This document shows positions 27,658 to 64,000 of a DNA stretch of 64,000 nt, in pieces. Below the pieces are notes generated by a model that did not search any database, was not told where the DNA came from, and worked only from the letters and a program-made list of their open reading frames with translations. The position numbers were made by a program, and so were the translations under genes. Numbering within the stretch: the first letter of the stretch is position 1; the number at the start of each line of letters is the position of its first letter. Location of the stretch: positions 157,423-221,422 of IMG/VR virus record IMGVR_UViG_3300024054_000362; one strand, given 5' to 3'.

Positions 27658-30600
27658 TCAGTTGACTTCCGCCCAAGTTTTTCCGGCCTTGGCGTCGACG
27701 GGAAAATTCATCTTGTTGCCGTTGTACTCGACCTCGCGCGTGAAGCACTTCACGACGAGGGCCTTGAGCAGATCCTGATCGTCTTCGTCGCACTCGAAGA
27801 CTACGGCATCGTGGATCTGAAGGATCGGCCACGCGCCCTCGGGCAGGAGCGGCATGATATCCGCGAGCCCCAGGTTGATAAGGTCAGCGCCCGACGCCTG
27901 AATCGGGAAGTTGACGACTTCGGTCAGGTCGAACTGCTTGATCGGAAAACATCGACGACGTCCGAGGATCATGCTTCGGATCTCGCCTTGCTGATCCGCC
28001 ATCCGTTGCATGTCCTGGTGCCACTTGGTGACGCCCGGCATGCGGGTCTTCATCACCTGCACCATCTTGCCGATCATGCCGATGGTGACCTGCGGGTAGT
28101 CGCGGACGACGGCCTTCCACAACGTCTCGATCGAGCCGGCGTAGAACGCGCCGTACTCCGGGCGCTTGATCAGGTCGCGGCGGACCTTGCGTTCGTCGAC
28201 AGGAACCGTGTCGAAGTCCGGCCAGACGATGCGCGCGAACTCGCTATGGATGTCCTTGTCCTTGTGGAAGATGTCGAGGAGGAACGGGTCACCTGACATG
28301 AGCGCGATCAGGCGTGCTTCGAGTTGCTTCGCATCGAAAGCGACGAACGCACGCCCGTACGGTGCGACCACCTGGCTACGGAGGTTGGGGCGTCCCTTCT
28401 TTTTGTCGGCCTTGGGCCAGTTCTGTGCTTGTGGTCCTTCGGAGCGCCATCGTCCAGTGATGGCGTGGACGCTCCATCGTGGGTGAACACGCAGCCACGG
28501 ATCGGCGAAGCCGTAACGGATCTTGCCGGGGATCGGTCGGCCTTCCTTGTCGAGGACCGGGCGATCGAGCATGCGTTCACAGAACGTCGACAGGAGCTTT
28601 GCGTTCTCGCGGTAGTTGAGGAGCGCTTGGATTTCCGGGTACTGCGAGAACGCTTCGAGGACGTCTTTCTTTGTCGAGATTCGACCACTGGCCGTCTGAA
28701 GACTGAGCGGCACACCGCAGGCCTTGAGGAAGGCCACGATGTGATCGCCCGAGTCGATCATGAAGTTGAACTTGCTAGCCTCGATCTCGCCGAGGCGTTT
28801 CGAAATACGTTCGTCAAGATCGATCGGATCGTGCTTTCGCGTACGCCGCGCCTGTTCGAAGGCGAGCCGTTCCTTGAAGCGCGCCAGGATCGTCGGATCC
28901 TGAATTTTGTCGTCCAGCTCTTTTTTGGCCGCATCGATGTTGGCGCGGAAGCCTTTGCGGAGTTGCCCGTTGATTTCTGGATCGATCGGGACGCCCTTCA
29001 TGTGCATCACGCTGGCGGCGTGCGCCATCGCGAGATCCACCTTGTAGGTCTTCTCGGCGTTCGACTCCTTGATGATGAGCGCGATCGGACCTTCGATACG
29101 TGCCGTCGCAAGCGTGTCGCGTGCGTTGTAGGGCAGCAGCTCGTCGAGCGTTCCTTGACCATGGCGGTATTCGGCCTTCCACGGCGGAGCGGCGTAGAAC
29201 TGCGTCAGGACACGCTGAAGGTTGTGTGCGAGGCCTGGGAACGCACTGTGATGCATGAGCATCGTGCAGTGGATTTCGCCGTTGATCTGAAAACCGTGAC
29301 GTTCCAAGACAGGTACGTCGTAGATCCGGTTGTGGAAGATCTTGACGACGGACTCGTCGGCGAACAGTTTGTCGAGCGGTTCGAGAACCTCCGGGATGCA
29401 CAGCTCCCACGCGATGCTGATCGCGCGCTCGAACGTGGCGAGCCCGAGCGCCGACATGTTGGCGTTGTAAGGTGAGAGCGCGGTGTGTTGCTTCGTGTTT
29501 TCGACGAAGGTCTCGGTGTCACACGCGAACCGACCTGAACGGTATGCGTCGACGACGAAGTCGGCGACGAGCTTCTTCGCCCGCTGCCAATCTTCTAGTT
29601 CGACCTGAATGTCGTCGGTGAACTTGATGTCGGCGCCCTGCGAGATCAGGTTCACCTTGGCCGTGTCGTAGAGCAGGTTCCAGAAGGCGAGGTCGACCGT
29701 GTGTGACCCACCACCGCCACTCGCACCGCCGCCACGAAGGATCGCAGCGGGGTGAATGCTCGGGATCACCGCACGCGTCCGTCCGCTGTTGTCGCAGTCG
29801 ACCTCGTGGTACGAGCCCGCCATCTGCGTGATCGAGAACTTCTCGTTGCCAGTGAGTTGTTGGGCGGCGTGAGCCCCGAGGGCGAGGACGGGCACGCCGG
29901 GGAACTGTGCGATCTCTTGTTTGAGTCGGTCGCCACAAGCTTGACGTGCTTGCTTCTTGATGGCGTCGGAGGCGCCGTGCGGCGGTTGGCAGTTGTGAAC
30001 GACGGCTCCGGGCGTGAGGAAGTTGTGCGTGCCTTCCACTTCGAGGCAGTACACGGTCGCGCCTTCGCCTTTTCGTCGGGGGCTCGTACAGACGCTCTCG
30101 GCCTGATCGTAAAAGGCCGCTGCTGGAATGGGCTCGTATGTTTGCGGGTCGTACTTGCCGCGATCTTCAGGTCGAAGTTTGTACGCCATCACAGGTGGAA
30201 CGTAAGTCGCGATCGCAGCACTGAATCGCGCAGTCCCTTCGACCGTGAATCGGATACGGCCGCGCCGAACGCGGTTTTCGAAACCGCGTGCACGTAGTAC
30301 TGCAGAGGCGTGAAGAAGATCTGGTTCGGGAAAGGCGACGCCACAAATCTCGGCGAGCGGACGGTGCCCGTTGCGGATCTGCATGTACCCATCGTCTAGG
30401 TACCAGACGGCAAACAACAGCTCGTCCGCCGAAGCGAGAACAGTCGATGGGATTCGTTTCTTGCCTTCGGGGTAGAAGAGGTCGCGTGTTGCATGTCCCC
30501 ATGCACCGGCAGCTGTACGGAACCCGTACTTAGCTTGCTCATTTTGTCGGGGTGGCTGTTGGAACAGTGACACGCCGAATTTTTTCAACACGCGCGCCTT

Positions 30601-31347
30601 CAGCATCGCGTACTGTTTTTGATCTTCGGCGTGGGTAACTACGAGTGAGCCCTTTGCGAGGGTTCCGTCACCGAGCAACGTTCCATAGGCAACCTGCAGT
30701 GCACGACCCGCAGGTGCCACGTCGCCGGTGGCGATCCACCCACCGTTGATATCGGCGGCGGGTCGCCAACCTTCCGGTGTCAGGACGGGATGATCTTCGG
30801 TAAGTACGGCATGCGTTCGTCCTCGGGCTCCTGCACGTTGCGCCCATCGGAACGATACGTCACGCATCTCGCGCGTTCCTCGTGGATTTCGATACCAGTT
30901 CGTAACGCGCGCTGCGATCACACTCCCTGTTGCGTCGATGGACTGTACGAGTCCGTCATAACGGTTGGCAACGAGGTGATCGATCCGTTTCAGGGATCCG
31001 TCTGCGAGTCGAACTTGGGTGGTCCCTTCGACGCACAGCATGCTGTTCGACACCCACAACGACTCACGTGCGATGCCGAGCCTGGAGAGCGTTTCGTTGA
31101 CGAGACGACCGGAGCTGCCGACGAACGGGCGCTGCTGGATGACTTCGTTCTGGCCAGGTCCTTCGCCGACGACGATGAAGTTTGGCCGTTCCCAGCCCTC
31201 ACCGAAGACAGGTTGGTTCGGTTTGCCGAACTTGCCGAATGGACAGTTTGCGCAGTCGGCGCCGTGCGCGTTGCCGCGGATTGTCTTCGGCGCGTCGTCG
31301 TCGACGAAGCGATCCTCGGACGGCATATCGGCAACGGTGAAGCTCAT
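27658..31347 (-). CDS. family A DNA polymerase with N-terminal family-4 uracil-DNA glycosylase domain and an intein
   Basis: UDG: CANC, VGEGPG, PFVGSSG, HPAAILR; exonuclease: CDTET, HNRIYD, YNARD; polymerase: DAKQLEAR, KRPEYG, QIHD; start at ATGA overlap. Confidence 0.92.
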   Translation of the reverse strand: MSFTVADMPSEDRFVDDDAPKTIRGNAHGADCANCPFGKFGKPNQPVFGEGWERPNFIVVGEGPGQNEVIQQRPFVGSSGRLVNETLSRLGIARESLWVSNSMLCVEGTTQVRLADGSLKRIDHLVANRYDGLVQSIDATGSVIAARVTNWYRNPRGTREMRDVSFRWAQRAGARGRTHAVLTEDHPVLTPEGWRPAADINGGWIATGDVAPAGRALQVAYGTLLGDGTLAKGSLVVTHAEDQKQYAMLKARVLKKFGVSLFQQPPRQNEQAKYGFRTAAGAWGHATRDLFYPEGKKRIPSTVLASADELLFAVWYLDDGYMQIRNGHRPLAEICGVAFPEPDLLHASAVLRARGFENRVRRGRIRFTVEGTARFSAAIATYVPPVMAYKLRPEDRGKYDPQTYEPIPAAAFYDQAESVCTSPRRKGEGATVYCLEVEGTHNFLTPGAVVHNCQPPHGASDAIKKQARQACGDRLKQEIAQFPGVPVLALGAHAAQQLTGNEKFSITQMAGSYHEVDCDNSGRTRAVIPSIHPAAILRGGGASGGGGSHTVDLAFWNLLYDTAKVNLISQGADIKFTDDIQVELEDWQRAKKLVADFVVDAYRSGRFACDTETFVENTKQHTALSPYNANMSALGLATFERAISIAWELCIPEVLEPLDKLFADESVVKIFHNRIYDVPVLERHGFQINGEIHCTMLMHHSAFPGLAHNLQRVLTQFYAAPPWKAEYRHGQGTLDELLPYNARDTLATARIEGPIALIIKESNAEKTYKVDLAMAHAASVMHMKGVPIDPEINGQLRKGFRANIDAAKKELDDKIQDPTILARFKERLAFEQARRTRKHDPIDLDERISKRLGEIEASKFNFMIDSGDHIVAFLKACGVPLSLQTASGRISTKKDVLEAFSQYPEIQALLNYRENAKLLSTFCERMLDRPVLDKEGRPIPGKIRYGFADPWLRVHPRWSVHAITGRWRSEGPQAQNWPKADKKKGRPNLRSQVVAPYGRAFVAFDAKQLEARLIALMSGDPFLLDIFHKDKDIHSEFARIVWPDFDTVPVDERKVRRDLIKRPEYGAFYAGSIETLWKAVVRDYPQVTIGMIGKMVQVMKTRMPGVTKWHQDMQRMADQQGEIRSMILGRRRCFPIKQFDLTEVVNFPIQASGADLINLGLADIMPLLPEGAWPILQIHDAVVFECDEDDQDLLKALVVKCFTREVEYNGNKMNFPVDAKAGKTWAEVN
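29992..31035 (-). mobile_element. LAGLIDADG intein (348 aa) in the UDG domain of the polymerase
   Basis: NSML|CVEGTT...HNFL..GAVVHN|CQPP; LLGDG and WYLDDG motifs. Confidence 0.9.
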
Positions 31348-32459
31348 GCGCGCAGTGCCTCCATGAACCACGTGAGCCACGAAGGAAGATCGACGATGGG
31401 CGCCGGAATCCAAAACGCCGGTTCACCAGAAACTTGCGTTGAAGGGGCGACTGCGATGAGGCCTCCTTCACAGAGAATTTCTAGGCCGGCCGCGAATCGT
31501 TGGCTGCGCGGGAGCCAGAGGCCGTGCGGAACGTTGTAGAAGTGCGCGCGCACGTCACCTGTCTGATGTGTCAACGTGATTGGTAGAGGCCCGTCGACAG
31601 TACTGACGGCGCGTGTGACTACGACCAAGAGTCGCGATGCTCCTCCAGTTCGAATGCCGATGCGCGTGCTTGGTGCGTGCCTCCACATATTGGCGACGCG
31701 TTCAGGGCGACATCCAGGAAATGTGTGTGAGACGAGATGCAGTCCAAGTTGTCTACAGGTTGTTCCTTCTGAACACGTACAACCGGCCTTGCCTTGTGCT
31801 TCAGGGGTCCTGAGCGGATTCGTGAATTGTAGATCTCGCAACGGGTCAACCCAGAAGTGGTGCTGCACATACCGTTGCGCAGCTTCGGTCAAGGACACCG
31901 TGTGATTCGGAAGCCAGGACCAGTCTCGGGTCTCGTGAGGCGTTGGTGGTGGTGGTGGCACTGCTGCGAGCAATTGTTCGGCGTCAGCCTCGCGCAGAAA
32001 TTTTTCCGGGATCAGATAACACGGTCGTGCAATGTCTTCGCGCCACCAGTTCGCGTAGCGCGCCAGACGTGGCAATGTCCAACCTACGATCTCGATCGAC
32101 GGACAACGGTGGGTGTTGACCAGGACGTGGGGGACATCTTCGGGATCTTGATCATGGAGTGGTAGACACCCGTTGGGATAGTTCGTCGAGCGAACACGGA
32201 TCCCCCCTACAAGACCAGCTTCTGTCCGCGCCGCTTCCCAGTCGCGCAGATTGAGTGCACCTGCCCATCCACAGTTCAGGAACTGTGCGAATGCGTACTC
32301 AGCGAGTGCACCTTGAATGTCGATCGTCTCACCGTCGGCTGTCGGCGTGACGCGCCCATCGTTGCGACCGCCTTGACGCTGTACGCGATAGCGTGTGCGA
32401 CCAACCTTGACGGCGTGCGCGACCTCGACATCAGACAGTTGAATCTGGATTCGCGTCAC
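31344..32459 (-). CDS. fusion of a nuclease-like domain and a degenerate primase-polymerase domain
   Basis: N-half GALAEYAF..VRST; C-half aligns by eye to 51726-52931 but lacks the DxD motif. Confidence 0.55.
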   Translation of the reverse strand: MTRIQIQLSDVEVAHAVKVGRTRYRVQRQGGRNDGRVTPTADGETIDIQGALAEYAFAQFLNCGWAGALNLRDWEAARTEAGLVGGIRVRSTNYPNGCLPLHDQDPEDVPHVLVNTHRCPSIEIVGWTLPRLARYANWWREDIARPCYLIPEKFLREADAEQLLAAVPPPPPTPHETRDWSWLPNHTVSLTEAAQRYVQHHFWVDPLRDLQFTNPLRTPEAQGKAGCTCSEGTTCRQLGLHLVSHTFPGCRPERVANMWRHAPSTRIGIRTGGASRLLVVVTRAVSTVDGPLPITLTHQTGDVRAHFYNVPHGLWLPRSQRFAAGLEILCEGGLIAVAPSTQVSGEPAFWIPAPIVDLPSWLTWFMEALRA

Positions 32460-34177
32460 GACGCGTCCTCGAAGAGTGCGTCGGCTGCTTTCACAGCGGC
32501 GCTGCCGACCTCGTTGGTCAGCTCCTTCGCACCGAGGCGAAGTAGGTACGCGTCGCGCGTCGATCGTTTGAAGCCGGTCAGCTCGTCGATCTCGGCTTTA
32601 TGGACGGGGTTCGGCCATGCGTTGGCGAGGATCTCCAACACCTGACGTTCGCCCTTGGGGAGCTTGGCGAACCAGTAGTCGCGTAACGCTTCGCCGGTAG
32701 GTAGCGGTTCGACGTCGGGCATCGCGGCGATGCCTTCCTCGGTTGCAAAGATCGTATCGCCGTCTTCCGAGAGGAGACCCTTCTTCCGAAGCCGCAGGAT
32801 GTAAGCATCCCGCGTCGAACGTTTGTAGCCGGTGAGCGTGGTGACTCGCTTCTTGATCAGCCCGTCAACGAACTGAATCGCCGCACGTAGCACGGCGGCC
32901 TCACCTTCGGGGAGTGGCTTGTCGTCGTAGGTGCCGTGCGACTTGGACGTAGAACGTACAGGCGCAGGTGCGGGCGTTAACGTGAAGCCCTTCGGTGCCT
33001 TCGTCGGCTGCTTCACGGGCAGCACGACAGGCGCCTTGAGCGTTCGGCCCGAATTCAAAACGAACGTTTGCAGCGTCGTCACCTGCGCGCGCAGGCTTGC
33101 CGTGCCGGCCGTCAGCGTCTCCAGGCCCGGCGCGAGCCTCTCACTGATCGCCAGCATCTTGACGGCGATCGCCTCGATACGCTTCAGGTCGCGATCTTTG
33201 AACGCAGGCTTCTCGACGATCTTGGTCTCGATCTTCGTCTCGGCCTTCGGCTGCGCGGCCTTGGTCTTGGTCAGCTCGGACTTCAGCTGTTTGATTTGCG
33301 CGCGCAGATCGCCGACGGTCTTGGCCTCTTCTTCGGCTTCGTGGGGCAGGTCCGCGAGCTGTGCGAGGACTTTCTTCACGCGCTCGCGTGGCGGCGTCGG
33401 AGGCGTCGCACGCTGACCTGCGCGCAGGTGCGTCGTCTGAACGCCGCCGACTTGGATCTGTTTGACTTCGTCGGCGAACGCGGGACCGAAGACGTAGAAC
33501 TGCCCTGGCTTGAGCGTGCGAAGCGACATCGTGTCTTCGCGCGTCGTGAAACCCAGCTCCGCGGCGGCGCGTTTCATGTCGACGTCGAGGGCCGACCTGC
33601 CAATCAACTTGTTGTTGCACTCGGCAGCGGCGTCCTTCGAGAGCTTGGCGATCCGCTGCGTCGCGAGTACGCCAGCGAAGCCGCGCTTGCGGCCGAGCGC
33701 CATGAGGTTCTTGACGGCGCCCGTTGAGACGGCGCTACCGACTTCGGGGCAGTAGAGGTGCGCTTCGTCGAGGATGACGAGCGCGGAGTGCCACAGGTCG
33801 CGTGGTGCGTTCACGAGCGATTCGAGGAACCGCTTCACGAATTCGGCACGCTGGGTACCAAGCTCGTAGATGTCGACGATCACGGAAACGTTCAGCTCCA
33901 GAAGTCGACGAGCGAGCAGCGTCGCGCTTTTCAAATCGGCGGGGCAGTCGCCTTTCTGACCCGCGAGCACGAAGTCGAACTTCTCGCGCAGCGTGTGGTA
34001 CTCGCCGTCGTGATCGATGACGATCTGTTGGGCCTTGCCGTACGTCTGTTCGATGAGACGGCGGATCGCCCAGCTCTTTCCGGCACCGCTGTTGGCTTGA
34101 ACCAGGAGGCGCGATTCGACGAGCTTGTCGACGTCGATCGCACAGTCCGCTCCTAGTAATGGTTCACGCTTTGTCAT
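32456..34177 (-). CDS. HerA/DUF87-like ATPase with coiled coil and tandem winged-helix repeats
   Basis: QANSGAGKS, IDHDGEY, LDEAH, GRKRG..LATQR; repeated TG[YF]KRSTRDAY. Confidence 0.8.
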   Translation of the reverse strand: MTKREPLLGADCAIDVDKLVESRLLVQANSGAGKSWAIRRLIEQTYGKAQQIVIDHDGEYHTLREKFDFVLAGQKGDCPADLKSATLLARRLLELNVSVIVDIYELGTQRAEFVKRFLESLVNAPRDLWHSALVILDEAHLYCPEVGSAVSTGAVKNLMALGRKRGFAGVLATQRIAKLSKDAAAECNNKLIGRSALDVDMKRAAAELGFTTREDTMSLRTLKPGQFYVFGPAFADEVKQIQVGGVQTTHLRAGQRATPPTPPRERVKKVLAQLADLPHEAEEEAKTVGDLRAQIKQLKSELTKTKAAQPKAETKIETKIVEKPAFKDRDLKRIEAIAVKMLAISERLAPGLETLTAGTASLRAQVTTLQTFVLNSGRTLKAPVVLPVKQPTKAPKGFTLTPAPAPVRSTSKSHGTYDDKPLPEGEAAVLRAAIQFVDGLIKKRVTTLTGYKRSTRDAYILRLRKKGLLSEDGDTIFATEEGIAAMPDVEPLPTGEALRDYWFAKLPKGERQVLEILANAWPNPVHKAEIDELTGFKRSTRDAYLLRLGAKELTNEVGSAAVKAADALFEDAS

Positions 34178-34793: not shown

Positions 34794-36776
34794 TTAGAAG
34801 TCGGCGTTCAGGTCGACTTCGCCTTCGACGCCCTGTTGGTACGCCGACGCACGGCGTTCGAAGAAGTTGGTCATCTCTTGGACGTCCTGCAGGTCCATGA
34901 ACCCGAACGGATTCTTGACGTTGAACGTCTTGCTGTAGCCGAGCGCCGCAAGACGCTGATCGGCGACGAACTGGAGGTACGTCACGACGTCGTTGACCGA
35001 GAGGCCGGCGACGCCACCTGCCAGGAGGTCTTCCGCGAAGGCGGCTTCGCAGTCGATAGCTTCGTCGATCATCTGTCGGACGTCGCGTTCCAGTTCGGCG
35101 TCGAACAATTCGGGTTCTTCGCGGCGGACGGTGGCGACGACCGCGAACGCGAACGTCATGTGACAGTTGCCAGTGATCGAGACTTTGTTGTTGTAGCGCA
35201 TCACAAAAGCGCCGGTTGGGACGGTTACACAGTGAACGTTCCCGTCGTATGCGACGATGTCGTCGAGGATCGACCCGCACGACACGATATCGACGTCGTG
35301 GATCCACGTACGGTACATCGTCGAGTACGTATCCGATCTGTGATCTTCTTCGATGCCGAACGTGGCGTGTCGACCGCCTAGCGTTGCCACAGCTTGAACG
35401 ACGTCGACGTTGTCGCGGAACTTGGACGAGTAGTAGATGTAGTAGCCGTCCATTGGATCGGCTGGCGTATGTCCGTCCCAGTGCCGAAGTTCTTCGACGA
35501 AGTCAGTAGCCCACTTGGTGTCGATCTTCGTCAAGTCGACCCACGTGTTCAGGTGCTTGCTGAGAGGTGTAGAAGCGGGGACGTTGATGAAGAACTCGTT
35601 CCAGCCGTTCTCGTCGCAGTCAACTTTGTACTTCCAACCGAGACGCGTGACGAGATCTGTCAATCTCGCGATTTTGCGATCACGCCGCAGAGAGAACTTC
35701 GCCGGGACCGTCCCGCAACGCTCGCCGGTATACCGCTCGCTGAGGTGCCCGTCGGCTTGGAACGCGATCAAGAAACGTTGCTCGTCGGTAAGCTCCGGTG
35801 CGACCTGTAGCGCGTGTCCTGCCACTGGAAGCTTCTTCTTGCCGTTGATCTTGAATTCAGACGCCGGCTGCTTGGACCACTGCTTCTGATAGTCCCAGCG
35901 CTGCACGATGTCGTGATCCATTGTCATCATCTGATCGACACCACCCTTGCGGTGTCGCAGATGTCGAACAGATCCTCGGTGCGGCTTGTGAAGCACCCTG
36001 AGCGGCTTCACGAATGAAATTTCATGAGTCTGAAGATCGAACTGGGCGACCTGTGTGTCTTCCGTCAGCTCACGGAAGTCGACCCAACCCTTGGGGGTTA
36101 GCACTTCGGTGCCGTCAACCATACAACTCTCATCTCTAAACACCCAGTTGGTGCCGTCGGCGAGGCCGGGCAGGAGGCCCTTCGAGCGCAGGAAGTAGAC
36201 GTAGGCGAACGCGCCGAAGAAGAACAGACCTTCGATGCACGCGGCGAAGCAGATCAGATTCGAGAGAAACTGTCGACGCTGGCGGGGCGTGCTGATCCGA
36301 TCGAGCGATTGGATCGAGTCGATCCAGCGAAGACAGAAGTCAGCTTTCTGTTTGATCGACGGGATCGTCTCGACGGCGGCGAACGCTTTCTGTCGCTCGC
36401 TGTGTTCGGGGACGTAGGTGTCGAGCAGGGTCAGATAGAACTGGACGTGGAGCGCTTCCTCGAAGAGCTGTCGCGACAAGTACATCCGCGCCTCGGGGGC
36501 GTTGACGTGCTTGTAGAGGTTCAGCACGAGGTTGTTCGCGACGATCGAGTCGCCCGTCGCGAAGAACGCGACGAGCCGTTGGATCAGGTGACGTTCAGCC
36601 GACGTCATCTTGGTGAGGTCGGCGACGTCCGTCGAGAAGTTGATCTCCTCGACGGTCCACGTGTTCTTGATCGCCGCGCGGTACATCTCGAAGAACTGTG
36701 GATAGATCATCGGCCGCAGCGTCAGACACATCCCAGGATCGAGGAGACGCGCTGGTCGCTGCATGTCGATGTTCAC
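34794..36776 (-). CDS. nrdB: ribonucleotide reductase class I beta subunit with intein
   Basis: WTVEE, FFATGD, EALH..FY, IEGLFF, RDES|intein|CH, NFFE. Confidence 0.93.
   Translation of the reverse strand: MNIDMQRPARLLDPGMCLTLRPMIYPQFFEMYRAAIKNTWTVEEINFSTDVADLTKMTSAERHLIQRLVAFFATGDSIVANNLVLNLYKHVNAPEARMYLSRQLFEEALHVQFYLTLLDTYVPEHSERQKAFAAVETIPSIKQKADFCLRWIDSIQSLDRISTPRQRRQFLSNLICFAACIEGLFFFGAFAYVYFLRSKGLLPGLADGTNWVFRDESCMVDGTEVLTPKGWVDFRELTEDTQVAQFDLQTHEISFVKPLRVLHKPHRGSVRHLRHRKGGVDQMMTMDHDIVQRWDYQKQWSKQPASEFKINGKKKLPVAGHALQVAPELTDEQRFLIAFQADGHLSERYTGERCGTVPAKFSLRRDRKIARLTDLVTRLGWKYKVDCDENGWNEFFINVPASTPLSKHLNTWVDLTKIDTKWATDFVEELRHWDGHTPADPMDGYYIYYSSKFRDNVDVVQAVATLGGRHATFGIEEDHRSDTYSTMYRTWIHDVDIVSCGSILDDIVAYDGNVHCVTVPTGAFVMRYNNKVSITGNCHMTFAFAVVATVRREEPELFDAELERDVRQMIDEAIDCEAAFAEDLLAGGVAGLSVNDVVTYLQFVADQRLAALGYSKTFNVKNPFGFMDLQDVQEMTNFFERRASAYQQGVEGEVDLNADF
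35166..36125 (-). mobile_element. intein (320 aa) in nrdB
   Basis: RDES|CMVDGTEV...ITGN|CH; FQADGH and HWDGH LAGLIDADG-like motifs. Confidence 0.88.
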
Positions 36777-56200: not shown

Positions 56201-56692
56201 GTGATTCTCGGCGTTACGGGACATCGACCCGATAAGATCGGCGGCTACGACGACGACGCCAACCCGCTACGCAGCTGGGTTCGTGGACAGATTCGTCGAC
56301 ACCTACAAACGTTTCGGCCGCTGTACGGCATCAGCGGGATGGCGCTCGGAACGGATCAAGATTTCGCCGCTGCCTGCGTCGAGCTGGGCATTCCGTTCAT
56401 CGCCGCCGTGCCGTTCAAAGGTCAGGAGCTGGCGTGGCGATCGCATCCGACGTCGCGCAAGAGGTATCGCGAGCTGATTGCGAAGGCTTACGAGGTCGTG
56501 ATCGTGAGTGAAGGTGGTTACGAGAATTTCAAAATGCAGGTGAGGAACGAGTGGGTCGTGGATCATTGCAACGCGATGTTGTGCGTGTTCGACGGTTCAC
56601 CCGGCGGAACGGCAAACACCGTCAACTACGCTGACCGCGTTCGCCGTGACAAGATCCGTATCAACCCTCGGGACTTTCAGGCGGCCGTGTGA
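56201..56692 (+). CDS. YspA/DUF1273 SLOG-family protein
   Basis: VTGHRP, SGMALGTD, RNEWVVD, DGSPGGT. Confidence 0.85.
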   Translation: MILGVTGHRPDKIGGYDDDANPLRSWVRGQIRRHLQTFRPLYGISGMALGTDQDFAAACVELGIPFIAAVPFKGQELAWRSHPTSRKRYRELIAKAYEVVIVSEGGYENFKMQVRNEWVVDHCNAMLCVFDGSPGGTANTVNYADRVRRDKIRINPRDFQAAV

Positions 56693-58314: not shown

Positions 58315-59505
58315 CATGCTTATCCGGTTAACACCCCAAACATGATTTAGACACATGAGTACCGTACTGACACATCAAGTCACGATCTGGATGGCAGGCG
58401 ACAAGTTGTGCTGAACCTCGCGAACTGGCGTAAGTACCAGCACCTGTTTGTCCCTCCGTCCGATCGCCCGTGCATCGCTGGAGTCAGCGGTGGTTCGACG
58501 AGTGGTGTGATGGCCGCGCTGCTCTCGGCTGCCGTGCTCATGTCGTTCCAGAACACGGGCAAAGAGCACGCGCTGACTTACGAATTCCTGGAGGCGCTCG
58601 CAGATGCTATCGGTCGCGAGATTGTCTGGTTGGAGTACCGCCCGCCCGCCTCGCGCGGGGCCCCGCCTGCGGCGGCACGTTTTGCAGTCGTAACACCGCG
58701 AACCGCTGATCGTAGCGGCGGACCGTTCGAGATGATGATGATGGACGCGATCAACGCATATCGCGCAGCCATCGGTAAGGGGCCGATCGCGCCGTGGTGG
58801 CGCTCGCGCATCTGCACGACGTACATGAAGACGCGACTCGCGCGCCGCTACGTGGAGTCGCTTGGGTGGAACGGCCACGATGAACTAGTGGGGCTTCGTG
58901 CCGACGAGCCCGATCGTGTGGCCAAACTCCGCGTGGGCGTCCCCAAGCGAATCGGTCGCCATGCGCCGCTTAGCGTCGCTGGTTTCACGGCCAACGATGT
59001 AGCTGCGTTCTGGGGTGAGCAGTCGTTCAGGCTCAACCTGCCGCCTCACCTCGGCAACTGCACTGGATGCTTTCTAAAGGACCAGGCCGACCAAAGCCGC
59101 GCGCTCGACCAGAATGGCGACGTCGATTACTGGGCGGGTATGCAGGAGCGGCATCCGGGATTCGGCGGCAAGAATCACCCCGGCTATCGTCGGCTCGCAG
59201 CCGAGGCGCCATCGCGTTACGCGATTGAGGCGGCACTGTTGGCCGGGCGAACGCCCGATAACGAGAACGGTATGGAGTCTCGTCGGTTCAAGCTTGTTGT
59301 CATCCAGGAGCGCAAGCGGCTAGCCGGACAGGTGGCGCCGTTCTCGTGTGCGTGCGAGGGCTCCGACGCACTAGCGCAGATGGACGACGACGAAGAGAAC
59401 GCATACATCGCATCACTACCAAGTGAGGACGCGGCATGAAGAGTGCCAATTCACAATCTAACAAGGACGGTCAGACCTGTTATGGGTGCCAACCGGATAA
59501 GCATG
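58315..59505. mobile_element. non-autonomous TIR transposon/mobile insertion cassette with passenger gene
   Basis: TIR CATGCTTATCCGGTT (58315-58329) and its complement (59491-59505); TSD CCTTCTTC at 58307-58314 and 59506-59513; no transposase. Confidence 0.9.
58408..59439 (+). CDS. PAPS-reductase/PP-loop family protein
   Basis: SGGSTS, NTGKEH..TY, RICT..MK, GLRADE..R, GNCTGCFLK. Confidence 0.8.
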   Translation: MLNLANWRKYQHLFVPPSDRPCIAGVSGGSTSGVMAALLSAAVLMSFQNTGKEHALTYEFLEALADAIGREIVWLEYRPPASRGAPPAAARFAVVTPRTADRSGGPFEMMMMDAINAYRAAIGKGPIAPWWRSRICTTYMKTRLARRYVESLGWNGHDELVGLRADEPDRVAKLRVGVPKRIGRHAPLSVAGFTANDVAAFWGEQSFRLNLPPHLGNCTGCFLKDQADQSRALDQNGDVDYWAGMQERHPGFGGKNHPGYRRLAAEAPSRYAIEAALLAGRTPDNENGMESRRFKLVVIQERKRLAGQVAPFSCACEGSDALAQMDDDEENAYIASLPSEDAA

Positions 59506-60430: not shown

Positions 60431-62536
60431 ATGAAGAGCACGAGGCTAGGGCCTCGGTCACTCACTGCCCGTAGGGTTCGGGACGTTGAGCGACCACTGG
60501 TCGAGGACATTCTTGCGACCGCAGATCGTGGAGCCGCTCTCGCCGTAGCGTTCGGTGCGCAGGAAACTCGCGCTGTCTGTCTTTGGTCGGATATCGGCAA
60601 GGCATCCGAGTCCTGGCAGATCCAGCAACGCGGGTCGAAGTACGGCCTACGTATTAACCATGTTGGATTAGGCGTTTGGCACACCTTACGCGTTCCCGGC
60701 ATCCCGTCCATGCAACGATTGGCAATCGCTGTCGCGATCGCCGGTCACCATGGTGGTCTCCCAGACGCAAGTTACCTACCTGCACTGGCAGATGAGAGCG
60801 CACCGCTTCGAGAGGCGCTGATCGATCTTCCCGACGAGATCACTGCCCTTCCCGTAATGCGACAACGTCGGTTCGCAAACGCGACGCATTTGTTCATGTT
60901 CACGCAGATGATCGCGTCGGCACACATCGACGCCGACTGGCAAAACGCGGCGGAATGGGAGCGAGAAGTCTGTGGTGCGCCCATCACACGACCTTCGTAT
61001 CCGAGCATCGAACAGCTCTACCGACAGTTGGAGAGCGTGTGCAGTGACACACGGCTCGATCGGAGCGATCTCCGTACTGCGTTCCGTTTGCACTATCTAA
61101 GTGCCGCTGAACGTGTTCCGGGGTTCTATTCGTTCTCAGCCCCTCTCGGTGCGTTCAACGTCGAAGCCTTGGCGCTGTACGGGCTGGCACACGCGCGACG
61201 CAACGCACGAGAAAGGGTCATCCTTGTCTGTTCGACGCAGATGATGTTCGAAGAGTGCACAGACAAGCTTCGTGCCTCTCTCGGAGACGCATTCGCAGAG
61301 CCCGCCGCGTTCGACGTCCAAAGTTGTGGGTTCAGTCCTCGTGTCGAGACCTGGGACGCTCCTGTCGTCGTTACCGCGCTTCGAGATTTCTTAGGGCTCC
61401 TCTTTGACAATCGTCCAGCGTCTCTGCGACGTTTCCATCACCTCGCACGCGCAGTGGTCGTTGTCGTCGACGCACAACAGATCCCGTTGCCCGTGCGCAC
61501 GTTGACCCGCGAAGCGTTACAAGTACTCGTTGATCATTTCCACGCTTCGGTGTCGCTCGTGTCGGCGGTCCCCTACGGAGTCGCGGAGGACGATCGACCA
61601 GAGTTGTTGGGGCCAAAGGACGCCTTCAACACGGTCTACGGAGAGATTCAGACCACATGGCCCGATCATCACGAACCGTTACCCTCCGCCGTACAGATCG
61701 CACACGAGATCGCCGAGCACGCTGAGTGTTTGACGGTTCTCCAAGATGCATCCAGATTGCGTGAGGTAGCACAAGCGATGAGGGCGTACGTCCCCGACGT
61801 CCAGGTCACTGCCGTGTCGTCTCGGATGTGTGCTGAACATCGTCGTGCGGTGATACGTAACCTTCGTGGAGGGTGTATCATCGCCGACGAAATCGGGAGT
61901 GCTCTCGCGAGGACGTTCAATACGGTCCTGTGTGAGATGACCGAACTGCCGACCATGGCCGCTGCTGCCTGTCGTGCGTTTGGTGACGGTCAGCGGCGTG
62001 CAAACTTCAAAGTTCTTCTCTCGACGAGACGTACGGCTGGAGCTGTCGTCACGCACCTCATGTGGCGAGGTCGTTCAACACTGGCGTTTCAGGATCCCGC
62101 AACCTGGCGCGAGTACTTTCTGGACTTGCGCTCCGGGGTTCTACCAAACGATCGGCAGTGGGCCGACGCTCGTCAGGCGGACGTCGAGTGTCTTCGGTTC
62201 CGAACACTGGCCGCGGAAATGTTGCGTGTCGGCAAACGCTGCGCGGCACCTGTGAGCCTTGGGTTGGGAGAAGCCAGCCTAGTCCCGGTCGTCGTTCCTA
62301 TGCCACTGCCGAGGGGTGGCTCCAGACCGGCGACCAAAGCCTTGATCGACAGGCTTCGTGCAGACGGTTCAAGTCAAGAAATTCTACGTCGACTCATGAG
62401 CTACGTCGTGTGGATCTCCGTCGACGAGCGCACACAACTTCTTCGCGACGGTCATGCTGTCTGGGTCAGCGAGGCCGTGGTCTATGTGATCAACGAGCTT
62501 CTGTACGATGAATTTGGGCTGAAGCCACTAGCCTAG
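60431..62536 (+). CDS. cas3: type I-C Cas3 homologue, catalytically degenerate
   Basis: IAGHHGGLPD, IDADW, ETWDAPVVVT, SRMCAEHR and YD..FG match I-C Cas3; HD reads SD, Walker A reads APLGAFNV, Walker B reads VDAQ. Confidence 0.85.
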   Translation: MKSTRLGPRSLTARRVRDVERPLVEDILATADRGAALAVAFGAQETRAVCLWSDIGKASESWQIQQRGSKYGLRINHVGLGVWHTLRVPGIPSMQRLAIAVAIAGHHGGLPDASYLPALADESAPLREALIDLPDEITALPVMRQRRFANATHLFMFTQMIASAHIDADWQNAAEWEREVCGAPITRPSYPSIEQLYRQLESVCSDTRLDRSDLRTAFRLHYLSAAERVPGFYSFSAPLGAFNVEALALYGLAHARRNARERVILVCSTQMMFEECTDKLRASLGDAFAEPAAFDVQSCGFSPRVETWDAPVVVTALRDFLGLLFDNRPASLRRFHHLARAVVVVVDAQQIPLPVRTLTREALQVLVDHFHASVSLVSAVPYGVAEDDRPELLGPKDAFNTVYGEIQTTWPDHHEPLPSAVQIAHEIAEHAECLTVLQDASRLREVAQAMRAYVPDVQVTAVSSRMCAEHRRAVIRNLRGGCIIADEIGSALARTFNTVLCEMTELPTMAAAACRAFGDGQRRANFKVLLSTRRTAGAVVTHLMWRGRSTLAFQDPATWREYFLDLRSGVLPNDRQWADARQADVECLRFRTLAAEMLRVGKRCAAPVSLGLGEASLVPVVVPMPLPRGGSRPATKALIDRLRADGSSQEILRRLMSYVVWISVDERTQLLRDGHAVWVSEAVVYVINELLYDEFGLKPLA

Positions 62537-62581
62537 GTGGCTGGTCTTCCGAGCAGGTTCGCAGGGAAAGTAGGCTAGGTA

Positions 62582-62620
62582 CGCCTTAAAAATCAAGGAC
62601 TTACGAGTTTACTCTCGACA
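62582..62620 (+). promoter_or_regulatory. conserved ~40-bp upstream element, copy 2
   Basis: CGCCTTAAAAATCAAGGACTTACGAGTTTACTCTCGACA upstream of cas5. Confidence 0.55.
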
Positions 62621-62663
62621 GAACGGACGCCTCGCGCGTCGTAGACAACAACAGGGAGAGCAC

Positions 62664-63299
62664 ATGAAACGGAGCAGTGTACTTGCACTACGCGCAATGG
62701 GGCGGCGCGCGTGTTGGACGAACCATCTTTGTCGTGTCGAACGACAGACATACGACATTCCTACGCCGTCTGGCGCTGTAGGGGTGTTCGAAGCTGTCAA
62801 TTGGCATCCCGGAATGCATTGGGAGCTGCACAAAATCTGGGTACTCAAGCCCATTCAGCACTTTTCACTGCGCACGAACGAGGTGAAGTGTTTCGCAGGC
62901 CGCCAGCCAATCAACATCGACAGCAATCGGACGCAGCGCAATACCGTCGGGCTCTACGACGTCGACTACATCTTCGAGGCCAGCTTCGTACTGGACGCGC
63001 GTGCGTCTCACGACGTCGCGACCAACGAAGACATCTTTCGTCGGCGCGTCAAGAACGGTGCCTGCTATCACACGCCGTATCTGGGGATGCACCCCTTTAT
63101 CTGTGACGTGATGGCGCCGCCTGCCCAGTATACGCCGATTCGCCTGAGTCGGAGTTTTGGGCGAATGTTGTACGGGTTCGACTACACGAATAAGAAGCCG
63201 ACGCCGCTCTACTTCGAAGCCTCGATGGAGAACGGTGTCGTGCAGATCCCTTCGCGTGAATACGTTCTTCAGAACCAAGGGATCAACCATGTTCCGTGA
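62664..63299 (+). CDS. cas5: type I-C Cas5 (Cas5d/Cas5c)
   Basis: ACWT...VERQTYDIPTPS, W.P, VLKPI, RTNEV, RTQR..L.DVDY, PYLG, GRMLY. Confidence 0.92.
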   Translation: MKRSSVLALRAMGRRACWTNHLCRVERQTYDIPTPSGAVGVFEAVNWHPGMHWELHKIWVLKPIQHFSLRTNEVKCFAGRQPINIDSNRTQRNTVGLYDVDYIFEASFVLDARASHDVATNEDIFRRRVKNGACYHTPYLGMHPFICDVMAPPAQYTPIRLSRSFGRMLYGFDYTNKKPTPLYFEASMENGVVQIPSREYVLQNQGINHVP

Positions 63300-64000
63300 G
63301 TTGTACGAATTCGCCCAGCGCAACCGATTAGCAGACCCCGGCTTTCAGAATCGATTCGTCCATTACGAGATCGTCCTCGACGAGAACGGTCGATTGATCT
63401 CAGGACATCGGATCGACGCAGAAATGCGCGCCCCCATGATGCCGAACAGGGCTGGTACCATCGTCCGTCCACAAGCTTGCATCGAATCGGTGCAGTACAT
63501 CCTTGGGCACGTCCTCGCAAAGCCGGGGGAGGACCCGCACAAGAAGCAAGAGCGTGCAGTGATTCTCTTCCGGGGACACTACGCGCACGTACACCGTATG
63601 GCGGAGGAAACCGGCGATCCCTACGCTCGGGCGTTGGCCAACTTCGTACGAGACGTCGACAATGGTGTCTATGGTCCGCCTCAACAGGCCGCCGAACGCT
63701 GTTTGGGATGGACATCTGTCGACGAACCGCTTACCGGCAGTGAGTGGTGTGTCTTCGCCGTCAAGGAACCGGATCAGCCGAAGTACTACATCCACGATCG
63801 GCCGGCGGTCTCACAGTGGCTTCGCGCGAACCGGCCCACTGCCGACAGCGACGTTGTTATCACATGCGCTGTGACAGGTCGCCAAGACAAACTCTGTATG
63901 ACGTGGAACAAGGTCAAAGGCATTCCTGGTACGCAAGGGTCAACTCTCGTTTCGTACAACCATGCCCCGTGGACTTCCTACGGCTTCGACCAAGGGGAAA
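63289..64000 (+). CDS. cas8c: type I-C Cas8c (Csd1), truncated by window end
   Basis: MFRELYEF..PGF...IVLDENG; YILG; CAVTG...KVKGIPG..LVSYN...SYGFDQGE; not in the ORF track because no stop codon occurs in the window. Confidence 0.85.
   Translation, partial: MFRELYEFAQRNRLADPGFQNRFVHYEIVLDENGRLISGHRIDAEMRAPMMPNRAGTIVRPQACIESVQYILGHVLAKPGEDPHKKQERAVILFRGHYAHVHRMAEETGDPYARALANFVRDVDNGVYGPPQQAAERCLGWTSVDEPLTGSEWCVFAVKEPDQPKYYIHDRPAVSQWLRANRPTADSDVVITCAVTGRQDKLCMTWNKVKGIPGTQGSTLVSYNHAPWTSYGFDQGE

Follow-up and report, generated by a model that had tools for sequence, protein, structure and literature searches.

A roughly 221-kb element from lake water, listed as viral in IMG/VR (IMGVR_UViG_3300024054_000362), carries a type I-C CRISPR operon whose Cas3 has lost its ATPase motifs and two nuclease ligands, yet related copies of this protein are kept by purifying selection, which suggests an RNA-guided complex that binds DNA without shredding it. 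We analysed a 64,000-nucleotide stretch of this record (hereafter, 'the window'), the end of which is also the end of the contig, together with a locus of the same genome that continues beyond it (L001). The features are collected in the table below.

Features of the type I-C locus and one further ORF, in window positions unless prefixed with L001
Location	Strand	Feature	Supporting evidence
32456-34177		ORF with a 'terminase-like' PHROG hit, which proved to be a HerA/DUF87 ATPase
60431-62536	+	cas3 of type I-C lineage (701 aa plus stop); HD, RecA1, RecA2 and C-terminal domain all present; every SF2 ATPase motif replaced and two HD ligands substituted ('dCas3')	Intact ORF; PADLOC Cas3c E 3.7e-60 (residues 12-697); AF2 model pLDDT 88, pTM 0.91; best Foldseek match I-C Cas3 8zns, TM 0.78
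62537-62663	+	127-nt cas3-cas5 spacer region with the cas5 ribosome-binding site (GGGAGAG before the ATG)	Sequence
62664-63299	+	cas5c (211 aa), the Cas5d-family pre-crRNA endonuclease and Cascade subunit	TIGR01876 E 3.1e-32 (62664-63296); PF09704 E 9e-17; PADLOC Cas5c E 2.8e-42; phmmer to solved I-C Cas5 chains 8g9t_N, 3kg4 and 7kha, E about 1e-29
63289-64000	+	First 237 codons of cas8c/csd1, overlapping the cas5c stop by 11 nt; cut by the window and contig end	PF09709 E 2.3e-24
L001:10626-12638		Full cas8c (670 aa)	PF09709 E 9.5e-59; PADLOC Cas8c E 1.1e-54
L001:12723-13901		cas7c/csd2, circularly permuted	PF05107 E 2.5e-53; two-segment BLAST pattern against five canonical Cas7c proteins
L001:14084-17557		CRISPR array, 46 handle-bearing units	Repeat analysis and hairpin folds

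The first-pass annotation had described a full-length, collinear but catalytically altered Cas3 followed by cas5c and cas8c, and this observation is confirmed. As that annotation had suggested, the protein was compared with Cas3 profiles: the PADLOC Cas3c profile matches it end to end, whereas Pfam finds only Cas3_HD and no DEAD or Helicase_C domain (an active phage Cas3, from the locus L024, does hit DEAD, Helicase_C and Cas3-like_C_2). Every motif previously quoted, changed or kept, was verified by a residue-level alignment to the Neisseria lactamica I-C Cas3 structures 8zns and 8g9u and by a MAFFT alignment with forty active I-C Cas3 proteins. Walker A PTGGGKT becomes PLGAFNV, motif II DE becomes VD, motif III TAT becomes SAV, motif V EAGVD.DFP becomes GSALA.TFN, motif VI QAAGRCNR becomes AAACRAFG, and the LEHHS block is deleted. 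In the HD domain, the motif I H becomes D26 and the motif II HD becomes S53-D54, whereas H77, H106-H107 and D167/D169 are kept. Of 183 columns that are at least 80 per cent conserved in active homologues, the query keeps 77, and the losses fall in the catalytic motifs. The I-C Cas3 fold is nonetheless retained in the predicted model, the top Foldseek hits being 8zns and 8g9u_P.

This Cas3 belongs to a small clade and is not an accident. A word-indexed homologue search returned only the protein itself and then active Cas3 at 27 per cent identity or less, and searches of IMG/VR and JGI metagenomes with the protein and with a clade alignment returned only the same phage plus active-type Cas3 genes (loci L022, L024 and L025). 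An exhaustive HMMER search of 1.84 billion representatives, in contrast, found three closer relatives (P0050, P0051 and P0052), and genomic contexts recovered through the permuted Cas7 added three more (loci L148, L150 and L151). These six further proteins, from other metagenomes, are intact, are 31-38 per cent identical to the query, and share dead motifs I, Ia, III, V and VI and the deleted LEHHS block.

A dead nuclease is less certain than a dead helicase, and in this respect the first-pass annotation, which inferred loss of both activities, requires correction. The ATPase is certainly lost by sequence, whereas D26 and S53-D54 are identical in the query, the related locus L014, L148, L150 and L151, although these proteins are only about 37 per cent identical and the dead Walker A site has drifted freely (LGAFNV, SSIVDA, ASVDRN). 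In addition, the basal members P0051 and P0052 keep a complete H...HD...H...HH...D site with a dead helicase, and the HD domain has the lowest dN/dS of the Cas3 domains, 0.15. A remodelled but working metal site (D...SD...H...HH...D) is therefore not excluded, and Cas3 would then be a nickase without a motor, nicking or locally cutting the displaced strand without ATP-driven translocation. We consider this reading unlikely: two of the invariant histidines are lost in the query and three in L014, L148, L150 and L151 (in which HH becomes TH), these positions are 100 per cent conserved in the forty active homologues, and serine is a poor metal ligand. With no biochemistry at hand, these observations do not settle whether the effector as a whole lacks a working nuclease or motor.

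The ratio of non-synonymous to synonymous change among homologues, and the presence or absence of stop codons in them, had been named in advance as tests of selection against simple decay. Among four of the relatives, NG86 dN/dS for the dead cas3 is 0.15-0.22, in the same range as cas5 (0.10-0.23), cas8 (0.13-0.31) and cas7 (0.11-0.41), and all four Cas3 domains are constrained (0.15-0.23 each). The dS values were 0.49-0.96, which is not saturated. These measurements come from a sister subclade. The query lineage itself shows no variation at all: all eleven loci that contain the cas3 gene are nucleotide-identical over it, contigs of four further lake runs show no differences (their lower word shares reflect fragmentation only), and the sequence is identical in lake samples from 2018 to 2025, such that a population dN/dS could not be calculated. 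Between the query phage and L014, Cas3 is 37.7 per cent identical, compared with 49 per cent for Cas5, 43.7 per cent for Cas8 and 45 per cent for Cas7. A dying operon with a pseudogene that has not yet acquired stop codons could be argued from the degenerate repeats and irregular spacing of three arrays, the loss of cas3 in one relative and the absence of identified targets, but seven intact ORFs of 660-705 aa exist at 31-86 per cent pairwise identity with no stops, the dN/dS equals that of the Cascade genes, and the sequence is unchanged across the 2018 to 2025 lake samples. Simple decay is thus contradicted and very unlikely.

Reading downstream for the remaining cas genes and an array, also named beforehand as a test, showed that the same genome continues with full cas8c, cas7c and an array of about forty-six units. 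The order cas3-cas5-cas8-cas7 followed by an array recurs in L148, L150 and L151, and L014 has the four genes, but its contig ends 212 nt after cas7. All seven clade members are directly followed by cas5; wherever the contig reaches further, cas8 and cas7 follow, and an array of 35-46 units follows where sequence continues beyond cas7. No Cas6 appears among the called genes of L001. The catalytic residues of Cas5c were not assessed, as the published triad could not be mapped reliably from the alignments to solved chains. A consensus scan found no sigma-70-like promoter or terminator in the operon, including the cas3-cas5 spacer region, and no RNA run was listed, so expression is unproven. One relative, L146, has no cas3 and no remnant of it but keeps the Cascade genes and the largest and cleanest array (about seventy units). 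Dead Cas3 is thus an accessory rather than the core of the system, which is a second correction to the first-pass annotation. No tnsA/B/C/tniQ or Mu transposase Pfam families, the genes expected next to the effector of a CRISPR-associated transposon, appear among the called genes within 10 kb on either side in L001 and a further locus, L007, or in L146-L151. The helicase ORF has equally good relatives in phages and in plasmids, and viral origin therefore rests on the IMG/VR listing and phage-type replication genes, not on capsid genes seen here.

This context bears on the two functions proposed in the first-pass annotation, neither of which was tested directly: a dominant-negative anti-CRISPR or a non-cutting, RNA-guided repression complex. 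In the former, dead Cas3 would dock on R-loops formed on phage DNA by the host's own type I-C Cascade and block recruitment of the host's active Cas3. Precedents for it are real: AcrIB3 and AcrIB4 assemble into defective Cascade and AcrVIA2 is a Cas3 homologue (bioRxiv 10.1101/2023.06.24.545427); moreover, the whole fold, including the C-terminal domain, is conserved, and the repeat handle is of an ordinary bacterial I-C kind, so hosts with I-C systems are plausible. However, those precedents are orphan viral cas genes without an operon or array, whereas this gene is never an orphan; no acr or aca neighbours were recognized; L146 dropped cas3 but kept Cascade and the array; and no host with a matching repeat was found. 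Inhibition of a host CRISPR-Cas system was not assayed, and we regard this reading as unlikely. The context instead favours the non-cutting RNA-guided complex, and the earlier interpretation is therefore supported in part, its proposal of selection rather than decay having held.

Repeats consist of a 24-nt hairpin plus a 12-nt tail ending GGATAGAAAC, and that tail is common in ordinary bacterial I-C arrays, making the handle alone too common to be diagnostic. The exact repeat is absent from 185,579 bacterial species-representative genomes. Stem positions 5 and 20 of the repeat show no covariation, and Rfam gave no hit on the array. In the query, L148 and L150, many repeats are degenerate and spacing is irregular, which could mean an eroding array. 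Mapping of spacer targets, likewise called for by the first-pass annotation, yielded no protospacer for any spacer, whether by local BLAST against the window and all related loci, by comparison of whole arrays with 50,697 phage records, or by a search of IMG/VR with five spacers in which every sixth base was left free; the lake metagenomes themselves were not searched with all spacers, and whether the spacers match competing mobile elements or regulatory targets, and whether the system is active at all, is left undecided by these results.

No cas4, cas1 or cas2 was found in the sequence examined: in tblastn searches of the window, L001, a further locus (L018) and the relatives, ORFs flanking fifty-seven bacterial I-C arrays, including Cas4, Cas1 and Cas2 verified in one of them (L097), hit only cas3, cas5, cas8 and cas7. 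About 147 kb of the genome was not read, so cas1/2/4 or a second cas3 could lie there. A further possibility is that the phage Cascade borrows the host's active Cas3, and perhaps its Cas1-Cas2-Cas4, in trans for cutting and spacer uptake, with the phage cas3 being a regulator or leftover. Indeed, huge phages that lack interference and adaptation genes have been proposed to use host Cas proteins (PMC7162821), L148 and L150 share only one of about thirty spacers although their Cas proteins are 86-89 per cent identical, so spacers do turn over, and the roughly seventy nearly identical repeats of L146, with no cas1 nearby, are as expected of recent acquisition. Against this, a dead Cas3 able to bind Cascade would compete with a borrowed active one, purifying selection on cas3 argues against a leftover, and no bacterial genome among the species representatives carries the phage's repeat. 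We consider such borrowing improbable.

Our preferred explanation, held with moderate confidence, is a derived type I-C system without an adaptation module, carried by mobile elements. In this view, Cas5c cuts the long array transcript at the base of each repeat hairpin, and Cas5c, Cas8c and the permuted Cas7c assemble on the crRNAs as Cascade and form R-loops on matching DNA. Cas3 can no longer bind or hydrolyse ATP and very probably cannot cut, so the target would not be shredded, and interference would work by occupancy, blocking transcription or replication of a competitor element or of host genes. Dead Cas3 would be kept as a non-enzymatic subunit, probably docking on Cas8c and the displaced strand, stabilizing or capping the R-loop and perhaps keeping a host Cas3 away. 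Of these elements, gene content and order, loss of motifs, retention of the predicted fold, purifying selection in relatives, type I-C repeat architecture and the lack of adaptation genes in the sequence examined rest on the analysis itself, whereas crRNA processing, DNA binding without cleavage and the docking role of dead Cas3 are inferred only. A more far-reaching possibility, which we offer only tentatively and consider less likely than not, is that dead Cas3 is a naturally evolved, ATP-independent R-loop clamp that is recruited by Cas8c, holds the displaced strand with its inert RecA domains and remodelled HD pocket, and turns a phage Cascade into a long-lived roadblock while denying the site to any active host Cas3; together with the permuted Cas7 backbone and arrays of 35-70 spacers, this would define a new phage-borne type I-C variant specialized for silencing rather than cutting.

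Type I systems that gave up cutting (the transposon-associated I-F3 and I-B2) did so mostly by deleting cas3. A lineage that keeps a full-length Cas3 with every ATPase motif destroyed, under the same constraint as Cascade, implies that Cas3 has a structural role separable from its enzymology, an implication directly testable with a four-gene operon. The same loci carry a circularly permuted Cas7, of which we found no mention in two CRISPR surveys (only one of which was searched for it directly), and arrays of 35-70 units without any adaptation genes in the sequence examined, in contrast with the reported median of six repeats in huge-phage arrays (PMC7162821). If the complex is a natural silencer, it offers a compact type I repression scaffold and would also show how large phages use CRISPR against competitors or hosts.

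Canonical type I-C systems (those of Desulfovibrio vulgaris and N. lactamica; structures 8zns, 8g9u, 7kha and 8dex) share with this locus the gene order cas3-cas5c-cas8c-cas7c followed by an array, the presence of Cas5c instead of Cas6, repeats built as a hairpin plus a GAAAC-ended handle, and a Cas3 on which our model superposes (8zns). The present system differs in that all helicase motifs are dead and two HD ligands are substituted, Cas7c is permuted, no cas4-cas1-cas2 was found, the repeats are 36 nt rather than 32 nt and heterogeneous, and it is carried by a phage-like element. The type I-C variant of huge phages (Al-Shayeb et al. 2020, PMC7162821) shares the huge-phage setting, a Cas5d-like Cas5, the lack (here, in the sequence examined) of Cas1 or Cas2 and a proposal of repression without cleavage. 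That variant is described as having 'a helicase protein instead of Cas3'; the protein studied here is a true I-C Cas3 homologue along its whole length, with its helicase inactivated, and the two sets of loci were not compared by sequence.

Nuclease-free interference by mobile-element systems is documented for type IV-A (CasDinG) and type V-M (Cas12m) (PMC11656645; PMC12669027), and these, like the I-F3/I-B2 transposon-associated systems, are carried by mobile elements, usually without an adaptation module, and act by RNA-guided DNA binding without target destruction. Type IV-A, however, keeps an active helicase, and type I transposon-associated systems mostly deleted cas3 rather than keeping a dead copy. 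A Cas3-less incomplete type I-C with a Cas8-Cas5 fusion (Altae-Tran et al. 2023, PMC10910872) is predicted to act as a DNA binder and resembles L146, but here Cas8 and Cas5 are separate genes, and in six of the seven related loci with readable flanks a dead Cas3 is retained under selection. Finally, the Cas-derived anti-CRISPRs AcrIB3, AcrIB4, AcrVIA2 and AcrVIA2.1 (bioRxiv 10.1101/2023.06.24.545427) are likewise virus-encoded homologues of Cas proteins, including Cas3, that no longer do the canonical job, but they are orphan genes in anti-defence clusters, whereas the gene described here is the first of a full effector operon with a large array.

The cas3 open reading frame near the end of the window encodes an uninterrupted protein, residues 12–697 of which are covered by a PADLOC Cas3c profile (E 3.7e-60). 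NCBIfam and Pfam searches detect only the Cas3 HD domain in this protein and no DEAD, ResIII, or Helicase_C domain, whereas an active phage Cas3 of similar length (from locus L024) hits all of those helicase domains. The gene is followed by cas5c (TIGR01876, E 3e-32) and by the 5′ part of cas8c. The window is the last 64 kb of IMGVR_UViG_3300024054_000362 (221,422 bp), and the same genome was assembled independently as a 221,568-bp ENA contig. The window also holds phage-type replication and nucleotide-metabolism genes (DNA polymerase, two helicases, ribonucleotide reductase, ThyX, and Prim-Pol). No capsid or terminase gene was seen, and viral origin therefore rests on the IMG/VR listing; one ORF gave a PHROG ‘terminase large subunit’ hit but is a HerA/DUF87 ATPase by Pfam, so that no packaging gene was identified in the window. 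The DNA polymerase ORF contains a LAGLIDADG homing-endonuclease stretch (aa 239–415) and the ribonucleotide reductase small-subunit ORF carries an insert of about 330 aa, both of which are probably inteins. Two genes upstream of cas3, a 343-aa ORF gives weak PAPS-reductase and SspD-like hits (Pfam E 0.002; PADLOC E 1e-6), which recalls the CysH-like partner of type IV-B systems, but the match is too weak to build on. A YpsA/SLOG-family gene also lies upstream of the operon, and a circularly permuted YpsA gene lies upstream in the related locus L151, which hints at a shared neighbourhood.

Coordinates of the features described (loci designated L are contigs carrying the same genome or related systems)
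Sequence	Coordinates	Strand	Feature
Window	27658-31413 and 34794-36776	-	DNA polymerase ORF and ribonucleotide reductase small-subunit ORF, probably with inteins
Window	32456-34177	-	HerA/DUF87 ATPase ORF
Window	56201-56692	+	YpsA/SLOG-family gene
Window	58408-59439	+	ORF with weak PAPS-reductase and SspD-like hits
Window	60431-62536	+	cas3, 701 aa
Window	62664-63299		cas5c
Window	63289-64000		cas8c, first 237 codons
Window	60431-64000		Stretch without nucleotide differences across assemblies and lake-water runs
L001	12513-12584 and 12803-12846		In-frame short tandem repeats inside cas genes
L001	12723-13901		Circularly permuted Cas7c, 393 aa
L001	14084-17557		CRISPR array
L014	6670-6846		Small ORF between cas3 and cas5
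L016	2512-2748		Small ORF between cas3 and cas5
L014	9681-10763		Circularly permuted Cas7c
L146, L148, L150, and L151	10001-11113 or nearby		Circularly permuted Cas7c
L146	7238-17001		cas5-cas8-cas7 and array, without cas3
L146	11235-17001		CRISPR array
L146	19485-20453		Tyrosine integrase gene
L148	11318-15277		CRISPR array
L150	11109-15993		CRISPR array
L151	1-52		Circularly permuted YpsA gene

The first-pass annotation had described a full-length Cas3 with altered catalytic motifs, and this observation holds. The motifs were examined in a residue-level alignment to the solved Neisseria lactamica I-C Cas3 (8zns, 8g9u) and in a MAFFT alignment with forty active homologues. Outside the changes tabulated below, H77, H106-H107, D167, and D169 remain. 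With the MAFFT alignment as input, AlphaFold2 gives a model with pLDDT 88 and pTM 0.91, the best structural matches of which are the two I-C Cas3 entries (TM 0.78 and 0.69). Because the alignment is dominated by active homologues, the model shows compatibility with the fold but does not prove it.

Motifs of active type I-C Cas3 and their counterparts in the protein studied here
Motif	Active I-C Cas3	This protein
Walker A	PTGGGKT	PLGAFNV
Ia	P.TSIIEQ	S.QMMFEE
LEHHS block	present	deleted
II	DE	VD
III	TAT	SAV
V	EAGVD.DFP	GSALA.TFN
VI	QAAGRCNR	AAACRAFG
HD motif I	H	D26
HD motif II	HD	S53-D54

The rest of the operon lies beyond the window end and was examined in L001, in which the same genome continues. 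There, cas8c is 670 aa long and is followed by a Cas7c (PF05107, E 2.5e-53) and, from 180 nt downstream, by a CRISPR array. The array has forty-six units that end in GGATAGAAAC or a near variant, twenty-seven of which have the canonical 5′ arm GTCG(C/T)GATCG; the loop positions vary, and many units are degenerate or irregularly spaced. The main repeat variants all fold as a 24-nt hairpin plus a 12-nt tail, which is the type I-C architecture, and the same tail is widespread in ordinary bacterial I-C arrays with 32-nt repeats. The repeat is absent from 185,579 species genomes, and no host was identified by this route. No cas4, cas1, or cas2 homologue was found in the window, in L001 or the further locus L018, or in any relative’s contig when these were searched with ORFs flanking fifty-seven bacterial I-C arrays, which include verified Cas4, Cas1, and Cas2; about 147 kb of the genome was not read. 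In-frame short tandem repeats occur inside two of the cas genes of L001, (Ala-Ala-Gln)n near the C-terminal part of cas8c and (Asn-Gly)n at the start of cas7.

The Cas7c of this system is circularly permuted: residues 57–255 match canonical Cas7c positions 95–293, and residues 286–376 match positions 5–104, with an Asn-Gly repeat and a basic tail at the N-terminus. The related loci L014, L146, L148, L150, and L151 also encode a permuted Cas7c. Eight further database proteins (P0199–P0206) match at 42–47% identity over 77–84% of the query, far above canonical Cas7c; the layout itself was checked in P0199 and P0205 (single near-full-length match).

An exhaustive profile-free search of 1.84 billion representatives with the Cas3 protein found three proteins much closer than any active Cas3, namely P0050 (39% identity, E 2e-120), P0051 (36% identity), and P0052 (31% identity). 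Searching with the unusual Cas7 gave the eight relatives P0199–P0206, the contigs of which added the loci L148, L150, L151, and L146. Alignment of the seven Cas3 proteins shows a graded series. P0052 keeps the Walker A lysine, DE, and an intact HD site but has lost motifs III, V, and VI, whereas P0051 has lost the helicase motifs, with only motif VI partly retained, and keeps the HD site. The query and the proteins of L014, L148, L150, and L151 also carry D for H and SD for HD, and those of L014, L148, L150, and L151 additionally have TH for HH. The order of events inferred from this series is that the helicase was lost first (P0052, P0051) and the HD site changed later. The dead Walker A site has drifted freely among members, but the substituted HD residues are identical across the subclade; because these new residues are conserved, a nickase without a motor is not excluded. 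All seven genes lie directly upstream of cas5. Small ORFs between cas3 and cas5 in L014 and L016 are partial, diverged duplicates of the 5′ end of cas5.

Selection was assessed with Nei-Gojobori estimates among L014, L148, L150, and L151 (dS 0.49–0.96). The dN/dS of cas3 is 0.15–0.22, compared with 0.10–0.23 for cas5, 0.13–0.31 for cas8, and 0.11–0.41 for cas7. By Cas3 domain, mean dN/dS is 0.15 for HD, 0.20 for RecA1, 0.17 for RecA2, and 0.23 for the linker plus C-terminal domain, and the whole protein is therefore constrained. The query lineage itself offers no variation for such an estimate, as all eleven loci that contain the gene are nucleotide-identical over cas3 and contigs of four further lake-water runs show no difference from the window over 3.6 kb. 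The runs that hold this sequence date from 2018 and 2025, and the population appears clonal and persistent. The first-pass annotation had specified in advance that close homologues riddled with stop codons would count against its reading, and the close homologues examined are not riddled with stops.

The operon encodes everything needed for a crRNA-loaded Cascade, and the arrays are very large for phage-borne systems, with handle-bearing units numbering ∼35 in L148, ∼45 in L150, forty-six in the query phage, and ∼70 in L146, and with no adaptation genes nearby. Three arrays have heterogeneous, partly degenerate repeats and irregular spacing, whereas those of L146 and L151 have nearly uniform repeats. 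The five arrays together hold roughly 160 spacers. L148 and L150 share only one spacer, although their Cas proteins are 86–89% identical, and spacer content therefore turns over. L146 has cas5-cas8-cas7 and the largest, most uniform array but no cas3 and no remnant of it. The core of the system is therefore Cascade plus array, and dead Cas3 is a selected accessory. We conclude that the most likely mode is RNA-guided DNA binding without shredding, with dead Cas3 as a non-enzymatic partner on the R-loop. Gene content, motif loss, and constraint in the relatives were observed directly, but the steps from crRNA processing onward are inferred. No spacer targets were found in the searches made, and no RNA run was listed from which expression could be judged. 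The interpretation offered in the first-pass annotation is partly supported: Cas3 is selected rather than decaying, but the two functional ideas, that the protein could act as a dominant-negative anti-CRISPR or in a non-cutting, RNA-guided repression complex, were not tested directly. The anti-CRISPR reading has real precedents, but those genes are orphans and this one never is.

Term searches of the 2025 classification (PMC12669027) and of a 2023 survey (PMC10910872) returned no passage describing a I-C variant with an inactivated but retained Cas3, and permutation is not mentioned in the 2025 classification (the word stem ‘permut’ does not occur there). A search for the phrase ‘inactivated Cas3’ found one unrelated paper, although prior description in the 2022 Cell survey of virus-encoded CRISPR systems, which these searches did not cover, is not ruled out. 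Huge phages were reported to carry a type I-C variant without Cas1 or Cas2 and with ‘a helicase protein instead of Cas3’ (PMC7162821). A Cas3-less I-C system with a Cas8-Cas5 fusion was listed as a probable DNA binder (PMC10910872), and a 2024 review notes that type I transposon-associated systems mostly lost Cas3 outright (PMC11656645).
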